64,000 nt of DNA, taken from positions 10,121,480-10,185,479 of the forward strand of contig CM121342.1 of the NCBI GenBank assembly GCA_051530055.1, read 5' to 3'. This stretch comes from Neoechinorhynchus agilis (lineage: Eukaryota > Animalia > Acanthocephala). Below are positions 6,074-64,000 of the stretch, piece after piece (position 1 is the stretch's first letter; every line of letters starts with the position of its first letter). Below the pieces are notes generated by a model that ran no database searches, was not told the origin of the DNA, and worked only from the letters and a program-made list of their open reading frames with translations. The translations under genes were made by a program, and so were the position numbers.

Positions 6074-8224
6074 AATCTACTATTATTGTTGTTAGAAATA
6101 AGCGCTCTCACAAAAAAATGGTTTATCCGCAATGATTTTTCAAATAACTATTAGATTCGAAGCATGAACGTTGTTTTTTTCAATGTTCAACAGTTGCTTA
6201 ATGTGAAGAAACGGTCATAGGCGAACTGAAACATATAAATGTGATTTTAAAAGTGTGATGATAGTGCCTCGTTTAATAAAAGAACTGGTTTAAAAGCGGG
6301 AGCTGCGTATATTGTTTTTAAGCAAGAACATCCTTTATTTGAATTAGTTTTTGTGCGTGTTGATTAAAAAAGCTAAATTATTACGTGTCTAATCTTTTGA
6401 AAAACGAAAATGAGTCATTTCTAATTTCAATTTTTTTTAAATCCGTAAAGTTAAATAAGCAAGGCAAAAGGAAATTCAACTGTAAAATTAGAGAGATCTT
6501 CGATTTGTCCAGAAAAAAAAGAATAAAATCCAATTCCAAGCATCGAACAGTTTTACACCTTTAAATTCCGTTTCCGTGAACCGTCCGGTGTAGAAATTAA
6601 TCAAGAAAAATTAAAACATGCTCACAGATAATTTAATACCAATAAAGAAGCCTCTGTTTAATTTGAATCGAAAACTCATTGGTTATTAAAGATGGACTTG
6701 GAGTTTATTTAGCTACGTAACCTCCCGTTCACGATACTGCGACGTTTTCGTCACTTTCCAAATGAACAACTTTAAATTCGCAATCCGGAAAACAATCATT
6801 GGTTATATTCACTTCATCGGGAGCTCCGATTGTTCCGTCGCTAAAAAGAACACAAATAATGACTTACTTTATTCGGAATCCTCACTATGGATCTATGACA
6901 GCAATGCTATATTTATCCCATTTAAGCGAACTGTAGGGACGTGTGGGAGTCGAGACGATTTTAAGAGTCTATTTAAAAGTTTTAGCACCAATTTGCAATT
7001 TATAAACTTACAATATCCCTAAGCAATCTATATCCAAACACTCTTGGTTGTTTACTTTCTGGTTGTTTCCCGCAATTCACACGAATCTTAAAACAATTTT
7101 TCGAACGTTACAGCAATAAGAATTCAAAAAAACTGACTAAATCACCATCCAAGTAAAACGTTCCAATGCTATATTCTGATCCACTCATTTTATAAGCTGA
7201 TTGTATACTCGGAAAGTACTTCGGTTCTTCGTTAGTATTGCACAAGATGACTTCTCCTTTTAAAATAAAAATTAAAAAAGAAGAGCAAATGCGAACTGAC
7301 AAACCCGTTGCAAAAAAACGAAAATATCTAAACATATCTACGCGGAATATTCTGTGACTACTAGTACTCAATATATAATCTCCAAATCGAACATAAAAAT
7401 ATTTCGCCAAATATATTCCTATTTCCATAAAATAGAAATTAAATTTTATTTAGAAAATATTTACCATGGAATAAGATATGAGGGGAAGATATGTAAAGAT
7501 CCATCCATTCGATTTTTTTCGCTTTATTTTGAGAATATTGATCATCAATTCCTCTAAACATAAGAAATCTTTTAACTATAAAAATGTGTTTTATCACCTT
7601 TTACAAATCAATTTCCATATACTTGGATTTATGGAAATAGCATGAAGTTTTCTACATGTCTTAAGAGCAATTTTCAATCGTTATTTTCTAACTTTTTTAA
7701 TAATTACCAGACCAAACTGAAGAAGAGAGCAAATATCAAAATTGTGATCGACAAAAAAAACAGATGCGATTTTTACCAAAACTTCATTTGGAAGATCAGG
7801 AAGTTTCTTTGTCTAGACAAGGGAAAACGAATTGTAGAATATTTTGCTTACTTTCTGCATTTTTAGTGATTTCAACGTCTTTTTTTCGCCTAGAAATATT
7901 AATCAAGGAAAAATGGGAAAAACCAGTAATACCGTACAATCGCCATCAACCTTTTTCATTTTTCCTTCCAATTTTATCTAAATTAGCAAAAGTGAAGATT
8001 TCCAAGTCGAAAGCAATCTCGTCAATGATAATGTCGGCGTGGTGCCTTCGATTTTATTCCGCTGTCTTTGGTTATGGAGTTTCACCCAAATTTTCGATTG
8101 CAAATGTCAATTCAGAAACAAGCACGTCGACGAGCTCTACGTCCCACTTTGCTTTCCCTCTCACGAAAGCAACAGCACATCAGCATCCATATATTCGAAA
8201 GGGTAATATTCTCAATGATTTGTG

Positions 8225-8470
8225 TAGGCCGAAAAATGAAGTAATTTATTGAATCTGATATTTCGTAGGCTCAATTTTGTGAATTTATCAAAGTTGGTTC
8301 GAGAGTAAATTTTTTGTCTTTAATGTAAATTAACCTAGCGAAACAACCTTTTGCCGAAATATCAGATTCAGTAATTGTTTTGATATGGCCGAAAAAATCA
8401 ACTAATTTAGTGAATCCGATATTTCGGAGGCACAAGATTGTGCCTTCATCAAAGTTTGTTCGAGCGTTAG
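8225..8470. mobile_element. Two tandem partial copies of palindromic MITE-like family 1, abutting the left end of the array
   Basis: The motif gccgaaaaa..taattta.tgaatc.gatatttcg.agg..caa...tgtg...t.atcaaagtt occurs twice and matches arms at 20859, 58194 and 62275. Confidence 0.6.
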
Positions 8471-8481
8471 TTTTTTGCTGA

Positions 8482-11400
8482 TTTTATGCGCTTCCGTGAT
8501 CCAAGAAATCGGTGAGTTGTGTGTCAGAGGAAAATAATTAGCCATGGAAGGGAAGGACACTTCAACGCTGAATAAAAAGTAACCGGCTAGCCAGATTAAA
8601 GATAAAAATATTTAAACAATTACCCAAGGTTTAAATCTGGGAGGGTTTGTACGTTCTGTAGTTGTGGCGAGGTTCCCTGTTTCCGAGTCAAAAGGTTCAA
8701 GATCCATTATCGCCGTTGACTCATAACCAAAGGAAACGAAATATTGCTGAAGGAAGAATATTCACTGGTGAGCTCTGTCTCCTCGGAGAATATCTGAGGA
8801 TCCGGAGGGATGCGTACAAACTCTTGGCCGTACGGTCGCGGGCATTAATTGGTTTTATGCGCTTCCCTGATCCAAGAAATCGGTGAGTTGTGTCAGAGGA
8901 AAATAATTAGCCATGGAAGGGAAGGACACTTCAACGCTGAATAAAAAGTAACCGGCTAGCCAGATTAAAGATAAAAATATTTAAACAATTACCCAAGGTT
9001 TAAATCTGGGAGGGTTTGTACGTTCTGTAGTTGTGGCGAGGTTCCCTGTTTCCGAGTCAAAAGGTTCAAGATCCATTATCGCCGTTGACTCATAACCAAA
9101 GGAAACGAAATATTGCTGAAGGAAGGAAATTCACTGGTGAGCTCTGTCTCCTCGGAGAATATCTGAGGATCCGGAGGGATGCGTACAAACTCTTGGCCGT
9201 ATGGTCGCGGGCATAAAGTAACCGGCTAGCCAGATTAAAGATAAAAATATTTAAACAATTACCCAAGGTTTAAATCTGGGAGGGTTTGTACGTTCTGTAG
9301 TTGTGGCGAGGTTCCCTGTTTCCGAGTCAAAAGGTTCAAGATCCATTATCGCCGTTGACTCATAACCAAAGGAAACGAAATATTGCTGAAGGAAGAATAT
9401 TCACTGGTGAGCTCTGTCTCCTCGGAGAATATCTGAGGATCCGGAGGGATGCGTACAAACTCTTGGCCGTATGGTCGCGGGCATTAATTGGTTTTATGCG
9501 CTTCCCTGATCCAAGAAATCGGTGAGTTGTGTGTCAGAGGAAAATAATTAGCCATGGAAGGGAAGGACACTTCAACGCTGAATAAAAAGTAACCGGCTAG
9601 CCAGATTAAAGATAAAAATATTTAAACAATTACCCAAGGTTTAAATCTGGGAGGGTTTGTACGTTCTGTAGTTGTGGCGAGGTTCCCTGTTTCCGAGTCA
9701 AAAGGTTCAAGATCCATTATCGCCGTTGACTCATAACCAAAGGAAACGAAATATTGCTGAAGGAAGAATATTCACTGGTGAGCTCTGTCTCCTCGGAGAA
9801 TATCTGAGGATCCGGAGGGATGCGTACAAACTCTTGGCCGTATGGTCGCGGGCATAAAGTAACCGGCTAGCCAGATTAAAGATAAAAATATTTAAACAAT
9901 TACCCAAGGTTTAAATCTGGGAGGGTTTGTACGTTCTGTAGTTGTGGCGAGGTTCCCTGTTTCCGAGTCAAAAGGTTCAAGATCCATTATCGCCGTTGAC
10001 TCATAACCAAAGGAAACGAAATATTGCTGAAGGAAGAATATTCACTGGTGAGCTCTGTCTCCTCGGAGAATATCTGAGGATCCGGAGGGATGCGTACAAA
10101 CTCTTGGCCGTATGGTCGCGGGCATAAAGTAACCGGCTAGCCAGATTAAAGATAAAAATATTTAAACAATTACCCAAGGTTTAAATCTGGGAGGGTTTGT
10201 ACGTTCTGTAGTTGTGGCGAGGTTCCCTGTTTCCGAGTCAAAAGGTTCAAGATCCATTATCGCCGTTGACTCATAACCAAAGGAAACGAAATATTGCTGA
10301 AGGAAGAATATTCACTGGTGAGCTCTGTCTCCTCGGAGAATATCTGAGGATCCGGAGGGATGCGTACAAACTCTTGGCCGTACGGTCGCGGGCATTAATT
10401 GGTTTTATGCGCTTCCCTGATCCAAGAAATCGGTGAGTTGTGTGTCAGAGGAAAATAATTAGCCATGGAAGGGAAGGACACTTCAACGCTGAATAAAAAG
10501 TAACCGGCTAGCCAGATTAAAGATAAAAATATTTAAACAATTACCCAAGGTTTAAATCTGGGAGGGTTTGTACGTTCTGTAGTTGTGGCGAGGTTCCCTG
10601 TTTCCGAGTCAAAAGGTTCAAGATCCATTATCGCCGTTGACTCATAACCAAAGGAAACGAAATATTGCTGAAGGAAGAATATTCACTGGTGAGCTCTGTC
10701 TCCTCGGAGAATATCTGAGGATCCGGAGGGATGCGTACAAACTCTTGGCCGTACGGTCGCGGGCATTAATTGGTTTTATGCGCTTCCCTGATCCAAGAAA
10801 TCGGTGAGTTGTGTGTCAGAGGAAAATAATTAGCCATGGAAGGGAAGGACACTTCAACGCTGAATAAAAAGTAACCGGCTAGCCAGATTAAAGATAAAAA
10901 TATTTAAACAATTACCCAAGGTTTAAATCTGGGAGGGTTTGTACGTTCTGTAGTTGTGGCGAGGTTCCCTGTTTCCGAGTCAAAAGGTTCAAGATCCATT
11001 ATCGCCGTTGACTCATAACCAAAGGAAACGAAATATTGCTGAAGGAAGAATATTCACTGGTGAGCTCTGTCTCCTCGGAGAATATCTGAGGATCCGGAGG
11101 GATGCGTACAAACTCTTGGCCGTACGGTCGCGGGCATTAATTGGTTTTATGCGCTTCCCTGATCCAAGAAATCGGTGAGTTGTGTGTCAGAGGAAAATAA
11201 TTAGCCATGGAAGGGAAGGACACTTCAACGCTGAATAAAAAGTAACCGGCTAGCCAGATTAAAGATAAAAATATTTAAACAATTACCCAAGGTTTAAATC
11301 TGGGAGGGTTTGTACGTTCTGTAGTTGTGGCGAGGTTCCCTGTTTCCGAGTCAAAAGGTTCAAGATCCATTATCGCCGTTGACTCATAACCAAAGGAAAC

Positions 11401-13049
11401 GAAATATTGCTGAAGGAAGAATATTCACTGGTGAGCTCTGTCTCCTCGGAGAATATCTGAGGATCCGGAGGGATGCGTACAAACTCTTGGCCGTACGGTC
11501 GCGGGCATTAATTGGTTTTATGCGCTTCCCTGATCCAAGAAATCGGTGAGTTGTGTGTCAGAGGAAAATAATTAGCCATGGAAGGGAAGGACACTTCAAC
11601 GCTGAATAAAAAGTAACCGGCTAGCCAGATTAAAGATAAAAATATTTAAACAATTACCCAAGGTTTAAATCTGGGAGGGTTTGTACGTTCTGTAGTTGTG
11701 GCGAGGTTCCCTGTTTCCGAGTCAAAAGGTTCAAGATCCATTATCGCCGTTGACTCATAACCAAAGGAAACGAAATATTGCTGAAGGAAGAATATTCACT
11801 GGTGAGCTCTGTCTCCTCGGAGAATATCTGAGGATCCGGAGGGATGCGTACAAACTCTTGGCCGTATGGTCGCGGGCATTAATTGGTTTTATGCGCTTCC
11901 CTGATCCAAGAAATCGGTGAGTTGTGTGTCAGAGGAAAATAATTAGCCATGGAAGGGAAGGACACTTCAACGCTGAATAAAAAGTAACCGGCTAGCCAGA
12001 TTAAAGATAAAAATATTTAAACAATTACCCAAGGTTTAAATCTGGGAGGGTTTGTACGTTCTGTAGTTGTGGCGAGGTTCCCTGTTTCCGAGTCAAAAGG
12101 TTCAAGATCCATTATCGCCGTTGACTCATAACCAAAGGAAACGAAATATTGCTGAAGGAAGGAAATTCACTGGTGAGCTCTGTCTCCTCGGAGAATATCT
12201 GAGGATCCGGAGGGATGCGTACAAACTCTTGGCCGTATGGTCGCGGGCATTAATTGGTTTTATGCGCTTCCCTGATCCAAGAAATCGGTGAGTTGTGTGT
12301 CAGAGGAAAATAATTAGCCATGGAAGGGAAGGACACTTCAACACTGAATAAAAAGTAACCGGCTAGCCAGATTAAAGATAAAAATATTTAAACAATTACC
12401 TACGGTTTAAACCTGGGAGGGTTTGTACGTTCTGTAGTTGTGGCGAGGTTCCCTGTTTCCGAGTCAAAAGGTTCAAGATCCATTATCGCCGTTGACTCAT
12501 AACCAAAGGAAACGAAATATTGCTGAAGGAAGGAAATTCACTGGTGAGCTCTGTCTCCTCGGAGAATATCTGAGGATCCGGAGGGATGCGTACAAACTCT
12601 TGGCCGTATGGTCGCGGGCATTAAGTTGTTTTATGCGCTTCCCTGGTCCAAGATATCGGTGAGTTGTGTGTCAGAGGAAAATAATTCGCCATGGAAGGGA
12701 AGGACACTTGAACACGGAATAAAAAGTAACCGGCTGGCCAGATTAAAGATAAAAATATTTAAACAATTACCTAAGGTTTAAATCTGGGAGGGTTTGTACG
12801 TTCTGTAGTTTTGGCGAGGTTCCCTGTTTCCTGGTCAAAGGGTTCAAGATCCATTATCGCCGTTGACTCATAACGAAATGAAACGAAATATTGCTGAAAA
12901 AAGGAAATTCACTGGTGAGCTCTCTCTCCTCGGAGAATATCTGAGGATCCGGAGGGATGCGTACAAACTCTTGGCCGTATGGTCGCGGACATTAAGTGGT
13001 TTTATGCGCTTCTATGATCCAAGAAATCGGTGAGTTGTGTGTCAGAGGA
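8482..13049 (+). repeat. Tandem array of a structured-RNA element: 13 core copies, units of 371 bp (one 369) and 270 bp (three)
   Basis: Unit spacing from ORF-track starts 8662, 9031, 9301, 9672, 9942, 10212, 10583, 10954, 11325, 11696, 12067, 12438, plus a diverged last copy near 12809. Each core is closed by ggtttgtacg/cgtacaaact. Homologous to 27461-27843. Confidence 0.97.
8732..8800 (+). ncRNA. Degenerate hammerhead-like core in the array unit (first copy shown, repeated in all 13)
   Basis: AC-GAAA-tatt ... ttca-CTGGTGA-G ... aata-TC-tgag. Homologous to the intact core at 27646-27714 but with A6->G and a broken stem II (ggaaac/gctct). Confidence 0.45.
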
Positions 13050-14064
13050 GACTTCAAAAATAAAATTTTACTGAAAACGTAAATGTTAAGCTTTGCTACG
13101 ATAGTGGAAAATCAATCGCCTAATGTCATTATTTTCTCAGTAATATCATGATATTTTCTTATTTCCTGATAATCGCTCTGCAGTTACTTTATAGCCTGAA
13201 AACAATTTAATGAATATAGTCAATGGATCGATGGAGAAAGGTTGTAGTGTGTTTAAATTGTTGGATGTGCGCTTTTTAGGTCCTTTTCGTCTTAATCGTC
13301 TTCCTTGGACTTTGTTGCAAAAGCACTATCACTAATACGTTCTCGATTGAAGGCGGAGGTTGTGTTTAGAGTTATTAATGTTTTTTATGAGACGTTGTCG
13401 TAAAAGCTACATTTATTTGTTCAATGAATTTGCAGCGATCACTGAAGGAACTTGCGGATCTAAAATAACATTCTCGACAGCATTCCCGGTCGTGTCAATT
13501 ATCCGTCTTTCTACTTGGAATATTCGCTAAGATCTGTATTAATTATGGAAAATAACTTAATCAATGGTGATTGGAAAAAATCATAAAGTTTGGAAATTAC
13601 ATACCAAATTTTTGCTTCGCAATTCTATCATGCCAGTCATTATATTTTGTTTTCTTTTTCAAGCCTCTATAAAAATGGCGGCGGCGGACTTTAGAATCTT
13701 TATTTTCCCTCAAAAATCAAATTCGAGTTTCCTTAATTGCTAGAGAACTTAACATATCCACATAAAAATAAACTTTAATCACGGATTTTCTGGTTGGTGT
13801 TTTATTGGAAGTGAAGGATTGTTTGGGTAAGAAATTTCGTAACATGAACGTTCTCCAACTAGAAATTTTCCGTTTCTCGAGATTGTAATAATTGAATGGA
13901 AAGTGGCGGAGACTACACTTTATCTTATACTTCTTTTTCCCGTGAAAAACCTTTCTAACGCATTTTTAAAGGTGAAAGTTATGATTGAATGTAAACTCAC
14001 CCAAAATATTCTTTAACTAATGAATGTCTTGGATTATTATCTTCGGGGAAAAGCTATTTTTTTC

Positions 14065-27200: not shown

Positions 27201-27563
27201 AGTTTCGTGGAAAGCCAAGTTTAAGAAACTTCATTACAGCTTATTCTTGGCATAGTTGTGTAACTAGTCATATTTCATTCATGTTCTTAATACAATCTTG
27301 GGTTTTTCCAGAATAGACACAATGTCGCGAATTTAATAGGTAAAAAATATTTTAAATGTTTGCTACAAATATCTGTTAGTGAAGATTGGCCAGCCGGTAG
27401 CTTATATCGATGTGTGGCCTATTATGACATATAGACCACACATCGATATACATCGATATAAGTTACCGGCTGGCCAATCTTCATAAAAAAATCTTAATTC
27501 AATGGCCTTGAATTAATAATTATAAAATTGGCTGAGTTTGTACGTTCCGCAGTTGTGTCGAGG

Positions 27564-27618
27564 TGGTCAAGTGAACTAATGCCCGTGATCCCGATTAAGG
27601 GTCAAGTGGTTCGAATCC
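27564..27618 (+). promoter_or_regulatory. tRNA-derived internal Pol III promoter (A box and B box)
   Basis: A-box-like TGGTCAAGTGA (27564-27574) and consensus B box GGTTCGAATCC (27608-27618), within a tRNA-like D-arm/hairpin/T-arm segment. Confidence 0.65.
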
Positions 27619-27645
27619 GTTGCCGCCAATGACGCACAACCAAAG

Positions 27646-27714
27646 GGGACGAAATACCGCTGAAGGGAGGAAATTCACTGATGAGTCCCGCCTCCTGGAG
27701 GTATCCGAGGATCC
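27646..27714 (+). ncRNA. Hammerhead-ribozyme-like core with non-standard strand order
   Basis: gggac-GAAA-tacc (27646-27658); CTGATGA-gtccc (27678-27689); ggta-TC (27700-27705). Stem II is 5 bp with G10.1-C11.1; stem III is 5 bp; stem I is weak. Confidence 0.55.
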
Positions 27715-27849
27715 GGAGGAATGTACAAACTCGTACCGGATGGTTCAGTGCATTGAGTAATCGAATTACTACTCCGAGCCAGGTCGGTGGGCTGCGTGCC
27801 CAAAAATTAACAGCCGTGTCATAATAGGCCGCACATCGATATATCTGTT

Positions 27850-29295
27850 AATGTTGCACAGAATTATTCCCAATTAACTTTATGAGCAAATCAAGTCTGT
27901 CTCTCAAAACAAATAGAAATTCAACCGTTAGCAAAACAATTCGGTTTAATATGCAAGGAGAGTGCTAAAAAAATTGATCAGAATTTCTTTAATTTTTTTA
28001 CAAATTTATCAAGTCTAAATTTTAAAAACAAATGAAAATTTAATCATTGATTTTGTTAAAATTAAGAAAAAAATTTGCTTTAATTTGTCAGGAAAATGCT
28101 AGAAGTAATTTCCTATGTTTCTCAGATTTTTCCTAATTTTTTTGAAATTTATTAAGTCCAAATTTAAAAATCAAATAAAAAATTTGATCATTTATTTTGT
28201 TAAAAATAACAAAGCAATTCCGTTTAATGTGCCAAGAGAATGTTATAAATATTCGCTAATGTTGACTAGATTTCTTATTTTTTTACAAATTTATCAAGTC
28301 TAAATTTTAAAATCAAATAAAAGTTCAATCATTAATCTTGTTAAAGTTGAAAAATACAATTCGTTTTATTGTACCATGAAAGTGCAAGAAATATCTGCTC
28401 AAGCTGCTCAGATTTTTTCTCATTTTTTTACAAATTTATCAAGTCTAAATTTTAAAATCAAATAAAAGTTCAATCATTAATTTTGTAAAAAATAAAAAGG
28501 CATTCGTTTTAATGTGTCAGGAAAATACTGTGAATATTTGTTCAAGTTGCTCAGATTTTTTATAATTTTTTTACAAATTTATCAAATATAAATTTTAAAA
28601 TCAAATGAAAGTTTAATCATTAATTTTGTTGAAATTAACAAAAGATTCGTTTTAATGTGTCAGGAAAGTGCTATGAATATTTGTTCAATATGCTCAGATC
28701 TTTTCTGATTTTTTGTTCAAATTTATCAAATCTAAATTTTAAAATATACTAAAAGTTGAACCGTTAATTTTTTTGAAATTAACAAAAAATTCGTTTAAAT
28801 GTGTCAGGAAAATGCTATAAATATTTGCTAACGTTGATTAGTACTCCTTTATCTTATTTTACAAATTTACCATGCCTGTCTCATAAAAACAAATAAAAGT
28901 TCAATCATTAATTTTGTTGAAATTAACAAATATTCGTTTCAATGTGTCAGGAAAGTTGTATGAATATTTGTTCAAGTTGCTCAGATCTTTTCTGATTTTT
29001 TGTTCAAATTTATCAAATCTAAAATTGAAATATACTAAAAGTTGAACCGTTAATTTTGTTGAAATTAGCAAAAAATTCGTTTTAATGTGTCAGGAAAATG
29101 CTATATTTGCTAACGTTGATTAGAATTTCTTTATCTTATTTCTACAAATTTACCATGCCTGTCTCATAAAAAACAAATAAAAGTTCAATCATTAATATTA
29201 TGTTAAAGTTAGAAAAAAACCATTCGTTCTAATGTGCCAGGAAAGTGCAAAGAATATCTGATCATGTTGCTCAAATTTTTTCTAATTTTTACAAG
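27850..29295. repeat. AT-rich degenerate satellite, ~144-bp period, ~10 copies
   Basis: The anchor caaattt recurs at 28001, 28286, 28431, 28574, 28718, 28862, 29005 and 29145. Confidence 0.9.
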
Positions 29296-33600: not shown

Positions 33601-33903
33601 GTAACGCTAGTTAAGAAATGAGGGATTTTTGAACTTATTTGATCTTAAAAGTCGTCCGGTGGAGTATGGCAACAGCCGATGGATACCCAGGAGGTGACTG
33701 GTGAGCAGCCTAAGCTCTACTAATATCAAAATTTTTCTTTTTTGTTGACACGATCAAAGCAAATAGTTAAAGAAATTTTAATATTTTAGTTTATGCTATA
33801 ATTTTGAGTATTTACGACGATACGCTTTACAATTTTTTTAAGTAAAAGCATTTACACGGCTTGCTTGCCGATTAAAATTAAACGGGCAACGCTCAGAGAA
33901 ACA

Positions 33904-34137
33904 TTTTGTATTTGAAATTTAGTTTTAAGAAATTTAAATTAGTCTGAAAATTCCATAATTAATACTACAACTCCATATTCTACGATATGTATATATGCTT
34001 TTGCCGTTTAAAGTTGAACGGATAACGCCCAGAGGAAGATTTTGCATTTGAAATGCAGTTTTAAGAAATTTATATTGGTCTGAAAATTCCATAATTAAGA
34101 CTACAACTCCACATTCTACGATTTGTAAATATATATG
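33904..34137. repeat. Direct duplication of ~95 bp at 136-bp spacing
   Basis: ttttg.atttgaaat..agttttaagaaattta.att.gtctgaaaattccataattaa.actacaactcca.attctacgat starts at 33904 and 34040. Confidence 0.85.
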
Positions 34138-36239: not shown

Positions 36240-36900
36240 CTGGAACCAATAAAAGTTCATTTGATCGTATTTGATTCCATATAGCTAGCTTCAATTGTTG
36301 AATTAACTATTATTTTCGATTGAAAATCAGCTTACAATTAAAGAAATGGATCAAATAGCGAAACAAAACAATAAATAAATTGATTCTGGAACTAATAAAA
36401 GTTATTTCGGTCGTATTTGATTCCGGATAGTAAGGCTCAATTGTTCAAAAACAATTTTTTTCGGCTGAAAATCAACTTAAGTTTAAATTAATTGTTGATC
36501 TTAGCGAAAAAATAAATTGATTTTAGAACTAATAAAAGTTATTTCGGTCGTATTTGATTCCGGATAGAAAGGTTCAATTGTTCAAAAACAATTTTTTTCG
36601 GCTGAAAATCAACTGAAGTTTAAATTAATTGTTGATCTTAGCGAAAAAAAAGCTAAAAATAAATAAATTTTTAGAACTACTAAAAGTTATTTCGGTCGTA
36701 TTTGATTCCGGATAGAAAGGTTCAATTGTACAAAAAAAATTTTCGGCTGAAAATCGACTTAAGTTTGAATTAATTGTTGATCTTAGCGAAAAAATAAATT
36801 GATTTTTAGAACTAATAAAAGTTATTTCGGTCGATTTTATTTGAGATAGAAAGGTTCAATTGTTCAATGAACTATTATTTTCGACTGAAAATCATCTTTA
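36240..36900. repeat. Tandem repeat, 135-148 bp period, ~5 copies
   Basis: The anchor gaac.a.taaaagtt recurs at 36243, 36389, 36526, 36674 and 36809. Confidence 0.9.
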
Positions 36901-37111
36901 GATTAAAGAAGATTCCTCGTTGCGAACCTGAAATCGCTGCATTTTGTTTCATTTTAGCAGCTGAATTACGGACCATCGATGCTTCAAATCTCGATCGATT
37001 TGCAATAGTTAAAAACAAAGAATTCTTTTCATCTGATCGGATGCCTGAAAGAAATGTTCCACAAGTCCAATTTTCTCCATTTAAGTCTAAATTTTGCTTT
37101 AACAATTCAAA

Positions 37112-61420: not shown

Positions 61421-62274
61421 CTTTAATATTGGCGAAAATCACAAAATTGCGTTTTATTTTGTAATTTTTGTATGGAAAAGAAAACTTCCCCGTTTAAAAT
61501 ATATATGATTAAAAGATTATCGAACAGGGTAATAAAATTTAACCTTAAAAGATTGATGGCGGTGAAAAATTGAAGGAATTTATCAAGTCCAATATTTCAG
61601 AGCATAATCTTGTACGCCTTTTGATCAAGATTGTTTTGGTGTTTTATTCGCGCGTGGCCACAAAAAACAAAATTTTATATATAGAAAATGATATTTGTAG
61701 CCTCTTTTTTAACAAATAAATCACTGATTAATTTTATTCTTTAGAGTGAAGAAAGCCAAATTAGGGTACGTCAAATAATCCATCGTTTTATAAGATTTCA
61801 AGCTTCAAAAAAGCGAATCGATTGCGCTTAAATCTTGAGCTCCAATCGGAATCAAAAAGTGGTCCATAAATATGATATCTTCGTATTCCCTAAAATTGAT
61901 TTAAATTGCCAATTTGTTTAAAGAGACGAAAAAAAGGATAATTTGTATCGATTTTACAGTCTCCGGAAGCTTTACTTAGATTTTGTTGGAGAATTGAACC
62001 GCAATACTTAACTTATACCCGTCGATTTTTCCCGCTGATTTTTGCACGATTGCATACATAAAAAATTGAGCAAGACACTGGTTTCCTACATAAAATCATT
62101 CAGTGTTATCCGAAAAATAGCGAAATCTTTCGGGTTATGCCATGTGAATTTTAGGTATCCATTAGCCTAGACCTAAAGTTGGAAAAATCAAGTTGACCTT
62201 TCTTTGTTTTCTAAGATGAAAATTCTGGAATTTTTATTGGTAAATTTATGTGTTTGTTTTTTATGGCGGTTAGA

Positions 62275-62413
62275 AATTAAAGGAATTTATTAAATCCGAT
62301 ATTTTGGAGTCACAATCTTGTACACCTTTTAATCAAGGTTGTTTGGAAGTTTTTTCAAGTGTACGTACGAGATTGTGCGCCAAAATATTCGGACTTAATA
62401 AATTCCTTCAATT
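62275..62413. mobile_element. Palindromic MITE-like family 1 copy (another partial copy near 61560-61640)
   Basis: aaggaatttattaaatccga.tattttgg.g.cacaatct.gtac / gtacgagattgtgcgccaaaatattcggacttaataaattcctt. Confidence 0.8.
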
Positions 62414-62514
62414 TTTTCGCCACAAAACACGAATAATTCAATCTTCAAGCGTAAATTTGTGCACTAGGAACAAATTTGAATAGTAAAATTTATGGAGCAA
62501 TTACATTTATAATA

Positions 62515-64000
62515 CTCAAAATCATTATCGATTAAGATATAAATTGCCGATATGTGACGAGGTACCTTGTTATATGATTAGAAATGTTTTTGTTAGTAAT
62601 TTAACAAACTGATAATGCTCCAGACGAGGTTAAAATCGTCTTTAATACAAAAAATCCTTTACCGGATGAAGGCCTAAATAACATTTTTGGCTATAAATCG
62701 GAGACCAATGCTAAATCGCCTTTGTGTAAGTTTCTGAAGTTCTAATATTGACGATCTTAAAATCTATTACATTCGCCAGAAATTATTATTTTTTATGAGT
62801 TTCCTCCATTTCGAAGCACTTTATTTCCTTTGCTTTTCCTAAAGATACGATCTTCTTATTTTATTAAATAGTCATTTCTTTTGCCCTTAAATTGACAGTT
62901 GCAAAACTCCATGGGCGCTGAAATTTATGGAGAAATTCCTTTTATAATATCTAAGTTAAAATGAAGTGCTCTTAAAAATCATTATCGATTTAGATATAAA
63001 TTGCCAATTTGTGATGAGGTACCGAGTTATATGATTACAGTTTTATTAGTAATTTAACAGACTGATAATGAACCTAAAGACGTTATAAGCGTCTTTGATA
63101 AAAAAATACTGTATGAAGATCTAAATAACACTTTTGGCTTTAAATCGGAGACCAATGCTAAATCGCCTTTGTGTAAGTTTCTGAAGTTCTAATATTGACG
63201 ATATTAAATTCTATTACATTCGCCAGAAATTATTATTTTTTATGAATTTCCTCCATTTCGAAGCACTTTATTTCCTTTGCTTTTCCTAAAGATACGATCT
63301 TCTTATTTTATTAAATAGTCATTTCTTTTGCCCTTAAATTGGCAGTTGCAAAACTCCATGGGCGCTTAAATTTATGGAGAAATTCCTTTTATAATATCTA
63401 AGTTAAAATGAAGTGCTCTTAAAAATCATTATCGATTTAGATATAAATTGCCAATTTGTGATGAGGTACCGAGTTATATGATTACAGTTTTATTAGTAAT
63501 TTAACAGACTGATAATGAACCTAAAGACGTTATAAGCGTCTTTGATAAAAAAATACTGTATGAAGATCTAAATAACACTTTTGGCTTTAAATTGGATACC
63601 AATGCAAAATTGCCTGTGTGTAAGTTTCTGAAGTTCTAATATTGACGATATTAAATTCTATTACATTCGCCAGAAATTATTATTTTTTATGAGTTTCCTC
63701 CATTTCGAAGCACTTTATTTCCTTTGCTTTTCCTAAAGATACGATCTTCTTATTTTATTAAATAGTCATTTCTTTTGCCCTTAAATTGGCAGTTGCAAAA
63801 CTCCATGGGCGCTTAAATTTATGGAGAAATTCCTTTTATAATATCTAAGTTAAAATGAAGTGCTCTTAAAAATCATTATCGATTTAGATATAAATTGCCA
63901 ATTTGTGATGAGGTACCGAGTTTTATGATTACAGTTTTATTAGTAATTTAACAGACTGATAATGAACCTAAAGACGTTATAAGCGTCTTTGATAAAAAAA
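62515..64000. repeat. Tandem array, 447-457 bp unit, more than 3 copies, running off the window end
   Basis: The anchor atcattatcgatt starts at 62521, 62978, 63425 and 63872. Confidence 0.97.

Follow-up and report, generated by a model that had tools for sequence, protein, structure and literature searches.

A decayed tandem array in the acanthocephalan Neoechinorhynchus agilis probably derives from an abundant non-coding retroelement with a candidate hammerhead core of block order G-C-S

Introduction

The Sm-alpha repeats of Schistosoma, reportedly described by Ferbeyre et al. in 1998, are said to form a SINE-like satellite (SINE, short interspersed nuclear element) with RNA polymerase III (Pol III) boxes and a canonical type I hammerhead ribozyme that is experimentally active. 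Here we analyze a family of repeats in the acanthocephalan worm Neoechinorhynchus agilis together with a tandem array of its ~371-bp units, found in a stretch of 64,000 nucleotides (nt) of contig CM121342.1 (assembly GCA_051530055.1, positions 10,121,480 to 10,185,479, forward strand). This whole stretch is called the window, and positions are counted from its first letter unless noted. The family resembles Sm-alpha in having ~335-390-bp units, both tandem and dispersed, a tRNA-like Pol III module and a hammerhead, and no sequence relationship between the two is known. We put at roughly 75% the probability that the array is decayed and was built by local tandem amplification of a ~390-bp, non-coding, non-autonomous retroelement that is abundant in the genome.

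Animal retrozymes of the type without long terminal repeats (non-LTR) carry canonical type I hammerheads of a kind that Rfam-type models detect, give rise to abundant linear and circular RNAs, and have been reported in rotifers, which belong to the wider clade of this worm (Cervera and de la Pena, NAR 2020, PMC7229834). Our family shares with them non-coding monomers (360-400 bp here, for a published criterion of 150-450 bp), an arrangement in dimers to multimers, and dispersal, and the G+C content of the array, 0.44, lies within their criterion of <45%. In both, each unit holds a hammerhead core, here with the blocks in the order G-C-S, not the C-G-S of type I, and without a match to existing models. 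The family further has a tRNA-like head and solo copies that are anchored at the 3´ end and truncated at the 5´ end, and no circular or abundant RNA was seen for it. A 2026 preprint argues that animal retrozymes derive, as non-autonomous forms, from Penelope-like elements (bioRxiv 10.64898/2026.07.22.740005), which leave both incomplete tandem copies and inverted pairs joined head to head, with the 3´ ends facing outward (bioRxiv 10.64898/2026.07.22.740005; PMC8557442). Penelope-like elements and our family share such tandems and inverted copies, 5´ truncation to variable extents, duplications of the target and a link to hammerheads; the hammerheads of Penelope-like elements are minimal type I motifs that act as dimers. 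In its behavior the family is akin to animal retrozymes, with insertion features of the Penelope type, but it lacks their defining canonical type I hammerhead and carries a type-GCS core instead. The retrozyme reading is partly supported for the family.

Six orders of the hammerhead blocks have been defined, and types SGC and CSG have been validated (Eckert, Weinberg and colleagues, NAR 2023, PMC10085705). Type GCS was represented there by GCS-1 of Caballeronia peredens, a single bacterial sequence beside a protein gene, which cleaves at 0.014 per min in vitro and was rated doubtful by its authors because it showed no covariation (PMC10085705). In the literature that we searched, there was no mention of type GCS beyond that paper. 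Our family has the same block order (GAAA, CUGAnGA, cleavage site) and the same need for two pseudoknots as GCS-1, and its intact copies have all conserved core nucleotides. The features that define the type, namely uninterrupted blocks G, C and S with CUGAnGA, GAAA, the A15.1-U16.1 pair and H17, are present in the family consensus and in a solo copy within the window (27645-27709), and fail in 13 of 13 array copies, which read CUGGUGA. Compared with GCS-1, the core described here is in an animal, in hundreds of mobile-element copies, and in tandem, so that an unknotted fold that uses an upstream block C is possible; its cleavage is predicted only.

The array and its dispersed family

The sequence-only reading of this DNA had described 13 head-to-tail copies of a ~371-bp unit, richer in G+C than its surroundings, each with a closing stem, a T-arm remnant and hammerhead-like segments. 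Tandem Repeats Finder gives periods of 369/371 and 270 bp with 98-99% matches at 8482-13049, and the 13 copies were recovered, ten as units of 369-371 bp and three, starting at 8945, 9586 and 9856, as units of 270 bp from which the final 101 bp are gone through one precise deletion common to all three. The core copies, 94-100% alike, start, by an anchor motif, at 8576, 8945, 9215, 9586, 9856, 10126, 10497, 10868, 11239, 11610, 11981, 12352 and 12723. Units 6-9 are identical and most divergence is found at both ends of the array (14 to 48 differences), which is the pattern expected from homogenization by unequal crossing-over. The G+C content is indeed higher (0.44, compared to 0.30-0.34 in the flanks), and the closing stem, the T-arm remnant GGTTCAAGATCC and the hammerhead-like segments are found in every unit. 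The 371-bp unit has only short open reading frames (ORFs) with TTG starts, and an exact-product look-up of its 74-amino acid (aa) ORF gave no record. When aligned to the family profile, the array units are without 25 columns that include the A box.

Two sister arrays (G000:C2:10042878-10044136 and C2:9762597-9763854; L009-L013 and L018-L021) of ~3.4 units each lie on the same contig, on the minus strand. Both are 94-99% identical to the window array, start at unit offset 92 and end at 237, which gives them the appearance of segmental duplicates that stem from a single piece of an array of this kind. Their junctions appear in DNA reads as loose ends at 12443 and 9181. In DNA reads from another individual, the total depth over the window array is ~2.6x that of the flanks, roughly as expected of the array plus two near-identical sister arrays.

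The search for further copies covered the whole 46.2-Mb assembly, whose three large contigs measure 19.4, 16.4 and 7.8 Mb. A query with the 371-bp unit collected 530 first-look candidates from all three; besides the window array, they comprise the two sister arrays, dozens of copies at 69-81% identity and other short arrays. A 14-nt family signature, CTGATGAGTCCCGC, has 868 matches with at most one mismatch, compared to 0-1 for the reversed control, and a 17-nt signature of the 3´ domain, GAAAATTATCAGCCGTG, has 302 against 0-1. Many of the CTGATGAGTCCCGC matches are spaced 361-403 bp apart, corresponding to array periods, and many form dimers. About 120 loci were aligned to a profile. Covariation was assessed on 76 non-redundant copies and a hammerhead census made on 107 copies that cover the region; pairs drawn from 36 near-full, non-redundant copies are 75% identical in the median.

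The consensus element consists of a 5´ part that is A/T-rich and variable, a closing stem of 15 bp (GAGUUUGUACAUUCC/GGGAUGUACAAACUC) with a tRNA-like head inside it, hammerhead blocks, and a 3´ domain in which a 9-bp stem follows the closing stem and is itself followed by a linker and an A-rich tail. In the tRNA-like head, an acceptor-like stem is accompanied by the A-box-like motif TGGTCAAGTGG and by GGTTCGAATCC within a T-arm that pairs perfectly, and ~35 nt separate the two box motifs; a strict A box is found in 9 of 36 copies and a strict B box in 7 of 36. ARAGORN detected no tRNA in the window or in 16 family loci, and likewise the Rfam tRNA model had no match.

The diverged homologue that had been pointed out at 27.4-27.85 kb, with a 15-bp closing stem, is a solo copy of this family. 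It matches the whole profile (nhmmer E 7.5e-100) and is 76-79% identical to the array over ~150 nt by BLASTN, and its closing stem, of 15-16 bp (27533-27548/27718-27733), is present in the minimum-energy fold. Self-matches were found at 27380-27483 and between 27403-27429 and 27817-27843.

A hammerhead core with the blocks in G-C-S order

The consensus sequences of the blocks, GGGGAC-GAAA-UACC for G, CUCA-CUGAUGA-GUCCC for C and GGUAU-C↓UGAG for S (the arrow marks the predicted cut), give every invariant core nucleotide, the A15.1-U16.1 pair and C17, and place stems I (4 bp), II (5 bp) and III (5 bp) in exact register with all 14 pairs. The order of the blocks is G-C-S in the linear and therefore also in the cyclic sense. 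Since this is not a circular permutation of types I-III, the core within one unit folds only with two pseudoknots. The hammerhead region is the best-conserved part of the family: CUGAnGA is kept in 61 of the 107 copies in the census and GAAA in 90, while 12 copies keep all core nucleotides and all 14 stem pairs, and 29 are near-intact. In the solo copy the core is intact, stem I has three of four pairs (a C.A mismatch is beside the cleavage site), and stems II and III are complete (5/5 each).

We tentatively suggest, at somewhat less than even odds, that the intact copies encode a working type-GCS hammerhead, which would make this the first animal example and also the first whose biological setting is clear. 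Self-cleavage of family copies, predicted from the core and the stems, is unproven. In intact copies the hammerhead would cut multimeric transcripts after GGUAUC, folding either as a double pseudoknot within one unit or in the ordinary topology with the block C of the upstream unit; an upstream block C followed by blocks G and S of the next unit would amount to the ordinary type I order with large loops. Such cutting would yield unit-length RNAs that could be circularized by tRNA ligase, as in animal retrozymes. Efficient cutting might occur only in multimeric transcripts, where the upstream block C would allow the unknotted fold. A monomer circle, for which only the double-pseudoknot fold would be available, would be protected from re-cleavage.

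Compared to one bacterial sequence before, the G-C-S order is found here in an abundant, retrozyme-like animal retroelement. If the hammerhead does work, its occurrence in hundreds of copies and in several subfamilies would lend the type the biological backing that is wanting for GCS-1. The family also allows two questions to be tested, namely whether nature uses the GCS permutation and whether a ribozyme can borrow a strand from a neighboring unit. Standard hammerhead models miss such elements, so that retrozyme surveys built on those models are incomplete. Rfam, used at the gathering thresholds and at E up to 10 on the window, the array, ten intact-core loci and a 447-bp tandem repeat in the window, found no hammerhead, tRNA, snRNA, other ribozyme or other known family; that its hammerhead models miss the core is expected given the G-C-S order. 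The sole Rfam matches were long hairpins that score with plant or animal miRNA models and were taken as inverted-repeat artefacts. Two metagenome pattern scans, for G-C and for C-S block pairs, gave no matches.

Canonical arrangements were tried by hand on the circular unit and across unit junctions, and were rejected. For types I, II and III, only 23 nt separate GAAA from CUGAUGA, which leaves too little room for stems III and I, and downstream of block C there is no GAAA next to a strand that could form stem II. A hammerhead on the antisense strand was also rejected, as the core motifs are absent from the complement.

The hammerhead-like segments noticed in the array are real, and they carry a mutation in the invariant core. 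CUGGUGA is the reading in each of the 13 copies (CTGGTGAGCTCT in 13/13, CTGATGAG in 0/13), with G for the invariant A6, and stems I, II and III have 4, 3 and 5 pairs. With stem II at 3/5 and the A-box columns deleted as well, the earlier impression that the array copies are decayed was borne out. Because the A-box region, stem II and A6 are lost, the array units are predicted to be unable to self-cleave and to behave as an inert satellite. The double compensatory change that had been noted between array and homologue (tatt/aata versus tacc/ggta) also exists, and is located in hammerhead stem III, which is UAUU/AAUA in the array and UACC/GGUA in the main family. Two other loci, L025 and L026, have the intermediate UAUU/GGUA with G.U pairs, and they too read CUGGUGA. 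The window array descends from a subfamily that already carried CUGGUGA, and the compensatory change appears to have arisen in a subfamily whose core was already mutated.

A separate subfamily array (L030:1974-3070, minus strand) is without block G, where it has a ~25-nt gap, and retains blocks C and S, showing that amplification has also reached copies whose core is incomplete.

Retroposition and the origin of the array

Profile matches begin anywhere along the unit, and 162 of 215 finish in its last 20 positions, which is 5´ truncation. Beyond the profile, 3´ ends fall at two A-rich sites, ...GATACTTAATAAA or, one short segment further, ...GTTACCGGCTGGCCAGACTTCAAAAAAA. Target duplications of 11-13 bp flank three simple 5´-truncated insertions (L040, with an exact 11 bp, L095 and L057). 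Many copies continue past one unit into the start of the next. In many, an inverted 3´-terminal fragment abuts the 5´ end such that two 3´ tails face outward; this head-to-head layout is seen in the solo copy, L045, L049, L056, L131, L136, L147, L103, L126 and others. Together, the 5´ truncation, the target duplications, the copies longer than one unit and the head-to-head inverted 3´ ends identify reverse transcription, with priming at the 3´ end, as the way in which the family has spread. Copies often land, or grow, as short arrays.

The window array begins inside a unit, at about consensus position 298, and its last unit appears to reach the A-rich tail CTTCAAAAATAAA through an internal deletion of ~75 nt. 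This start inside a unit, the family tail at the right end and a possible 9-bp target duplication suggest a single multimeric insertion that was later reshaped by unequal crossing-over. The array could thus have arrived as one multimer and then been homogenized and expanded. By itself it is a decayed satellite of an ordinary kind, with a mobile element as its source, and the greater significance lies with the family.

Many reverse-transcriptase matches and 145 GIY-YIG matches were found in the genome, some of the latter inside open frames of 703-826 aa. A Pfam scan of the ORFs beside family copies and in the window recovered host genes (NAD(P) transhydrogenase, phosphatase, PHD, WD40 and TYW3) and, ~1 kb from the copy at L026, one GIY-YIG ORF of 150 aa. 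Elsewhere (G000:C2:5204799-5213238 and C2:4549311-4554649), GIY-YIG matches recur every ~410 bp in open frames of ~134 aa, as if a short unit coding for the beginning of a GIY-YIG domain were repeated there in tandem; it could be what is left of a gutted Penelope-like element.

RNA across the array and the neighboring gene

Three sequencing runs are true RNA, as their reads skip GT-AG introns on the minus strand (7659/7708, 7812/7852 and 7888/7937), which no DNA read does. Over the array, they give only contigs of 74-226 nt at a depth of 3-25, summed over ~20 near-identical units, compared to a depth of 32-96 for the neighboring minus-strand gene and of 3 for a contig of the right flank (13045-13233). 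These levels fit background or read-through transcription and not an abundant small RNA.

The RNA data bear on whether the array is a live retrozyme locus, in which a multimer transcript would be made, hammerheads would excise ~371- and 270-nt RNAs, and these would be circularized and reverse-transcribed in trans. The unit size, tandem arrangement and low G+C content are right for such a locus, every unit retains full pairing in stems I and III, the latter with a compensatory change at two positions compared to the main family, and RNA contigs do touch the array. However, the invariant A6 is G in all 13 copies, stem II is broken, and the array unit folds no more stably than shuffled sequence. 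The RNA depth does not exceed the expectation for ~20 copies at background, given the depth of 3 in the flank, and the sole linked RNA piece joins the minus-strand gene and so is antisense to the hammerhead strand. We give very little credence to a live locus, and return to a decayed array of the dispersed element.

The neighboring minus-strand gene (7600-8521) has three GT-AG introns, 7660-7707, 7813-7851 and 7889-7936. Its joined exons form an ORF with an F-box-like LPDLPNEVLVKI motif, and its 5´ untranslated part extends into the first, partial unit of the array: in a depth-32 RNA contig, gene exons (7708-7812 and 7937-8232) are joined across 152 nt to 8385-8521. This splice into the partial unit is what might be expected if the host had taken over the array, as promoter or 5´ untranslated region of the adjacent gene or as a cluster of structured host RNA genes. 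Yet assembly of a contig stops at the first repeat words, and position 8521 therefore does not map a transcript start; the edge unit alone is involved, no Rfam family matches, the units are decaying copies of a dispersed element, and the two sister arrays on the same contig have other flanks. Host use therefore seems highly unlikely to us.

The 152-nt stretch skipped in RNA, 8233-8384, was seen in X4 and has non-GT-AG ends (AA..AT on the plus strand); it is situated between the spliced gene and the array. In X5 the skipped stretch measures 151 nt, and neither form is passed over by any DNA read. A hairpin at 8343-8441 that is flagged by Rfam miRNA models lies just to the right of this stretch and overlaps its end.

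Tests of RNA structure and the weighing of contrary evidence

The stems shared by the array and its homologue had been read as a sign of selection on RNA structure, a claim that was put to several tests. Fold z-scores are -2.86 (plus strand) and -2.50 (minus strand) for the solo copy, and -0.77 and +0.56 for the array unit, which is no stabler than shuffled sequence. The sole helix clearly above column shuffles in the 76 copies is the 9-bp stem of the 3´ domain, GGUUCAGGG/CCCUGAACC, with 18 double changes compared to 6.6 expected (0/500 shuffles), and since column shuffles ignore relatedness, even this signal is weak. The 3´ strand of this stem is removed by the 101-bp deletion in the three 270-bp array units, from which the greater part of the 3´ domain is gone. 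The acceptor-like stem exceeds shuffles marginally. Selection on RNA structure, which rests on one stem III exchange and one 3´-domain stem, is not demonstrated.

A number of observations weigh against our reading of the family and of its hammerhead. Stems I-III, the closing stem and two competing local helices are not above column shuffles in the same 76 copies; for stems I-III this holds for the paired fraction and for double changes (shuffles reached the observed pairing in 34/500 for stem I, 166/500 for II and 26/500 for III). An absence of stem covariation is expected, and has little power, if copies decay neutrally after insertion, but it lends the stems no positive support. RNAalifold found no consensus pairs in 39 near-full copies. 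Stem I is merely 4 bp, and a competing hairpin, ACUCA-CUGA-UGAGU flanked by GGAGG/CCUCC, can absorb block C. The CUGGUGA subfamily still multiplied (L025, L026 and three arrays), so catalysis is perhaps unnecessary for spread. A conserved internal TTTT in the unit argues against Pol III making a full-length template. The Pfam scan of copy-adjacent and window ORFs found no reverse transcriptase next to a copy, and an autonomous partner was not recognized. For the array, the copies of the possible target duplication, TTTTGCTGA and TTTTACTGA, match at 8 of 9 positions in AT-rich DNA, possibly by chance. Finally, unit-length or circular RNA was not evident in the three RNA runs, whose contigs cannot show ends, strand or circles, and the published RNA libraries appear to be mRNA-Seq, which would under-sample RNA that is not polyadenylated (PMC12690905). 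Of the proposal in the sequence-only reading that these are retrozymes, the genomic habits and the presence of a hammerhead core are supported; the core is not of the canonical type I by which described retrozymes are defined, and the RNA runs gave no sign of unit-length or circular molecules.

Several of these points would also suit an ordinary tRNA-derived SINE moved by a long interspersed nuclear element (LINE) or a Penelope-like element, in which the hammerhead blocks are a relic or coincidence and not catalytic. The conserved region would then serve, for example, in recognition by a reverse transcriptase, and the arrays would come from DNA-level duplication only. The A- and B-box motifs ~35 nt apart, the A-rich tail, the 5´ truncation and the target duplications are all features of such an element. 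The lack of covariation in the hammerhead stems and the continued multiplication of the CUGGUGA subfamily agree with it. The entire 195-270 region is conserved, and not the catalytic nucleotides especially, with U7 as conserved as its neighbors, and CUGAUGAG can be interpreted as belonging to a plain palindromic hairpin. However, by a rough estimate, the chance occurrence of CUGAUGA, GAAA, A15.1-U16.1, C17 and three helices in register has a probability of ~1e-4. The motif sits in an otherwise retrozyme-like element, where a hammerhead would be expected, and the GCS order does cleave in vitro (PMC10085705). The tRNA side is itself thin, with no tRNA by ARAGORN or Rfam, few strict A and B boxes (9/36 and 7/36) and an internal TTTT. 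On balance we consider a plain SINE unlikely, if well short of negligible, and favor the retrozyme-like retroelement from which the array has decayed.

Feature coordinates and other repeats in the window

The positions of the array, the solo copy and their parts are collected in Table 1.

Table 1. Features of the tandem array, the solo copy and the family consensus (window positions unless stated; the arrow marks the predicted cut)
Feature	Position	Strand	Remarks
Possible target-site duplication, left copy TTTTGCTGA	8473-8481		Right copy TTTTACTGA at 13066-13074
Tandem array	8482-13051	+	Partial unit 8482-8575 (3´ domain only), then 13 head-to-tail core copies
Reference 371-bp unit	10126-10496	+	Identical in four consecutive copies
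Closing stem (P1), 5´ strand, reference unit	10193-10206	+	Pairs with 10357-10373
Block G, array unit	10282-10295	+	GGAAAC-GAAA-UAUU; GAAA intact, stem II strand changed
Block C, array unit	10311-10326	+	CUGGUGA (G for invariant A6); stem II strand GCUCU pairs 3/5
Block S, array unit	10338-10348	+	AAUAUC↓UGAG; stems III (5/5) and I (4/4) still paired
A-rich tail CTTCAAAAATAAA	13052-13064	+	Matches the usual 3´ tail of the family
Inverted 3´-terminal fragment (linker and tail)	27369-27430	-	Head-to-head with the solo copy
Solo family copy, slightly over one unit	27431-27842	+	Terminal redundancy GGCCRCACATCGATAT
Closing stem (P1), 5´ strand, solo copy	27534-27548	+	Pairs with 27718-27732
tRNA-like head, solo copy	27564-27618	+	A-box-like TGGTCAAGTGA 27564-27574; B-box/T-arm GGTTCGAATCC 27608-27618
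Block G, solo copy	27645-27658	+	GGGGAC-GAAA-UACC
Block C, solo copy	27674-27689	+	UUCA-CUGAUGA-GUCCC
Block S, solo copy	27700-27709	+	GGUAUC↓CGAG; predicted cut after C27705
9-bp 3´-domain stem	Consensus 280-288/311-319		Window 27739-27790 in the solo copy, approximately

Other repeats are also present in the window. A 447-bp tandem repeat at 62518-64000 (3.3 copies, 95%) runs off the window end and has no Rfam match, and a long hairpin at 62274-62414 is just ahead of it. Further A/T-rich tandem arrays, with 74-87% matches, are found at 33865-34132 (136 bp), 36243-36910 (137 bp) and 27974-29290 (143/287 bp), the last of which begins ~130 bp past the solo copy.

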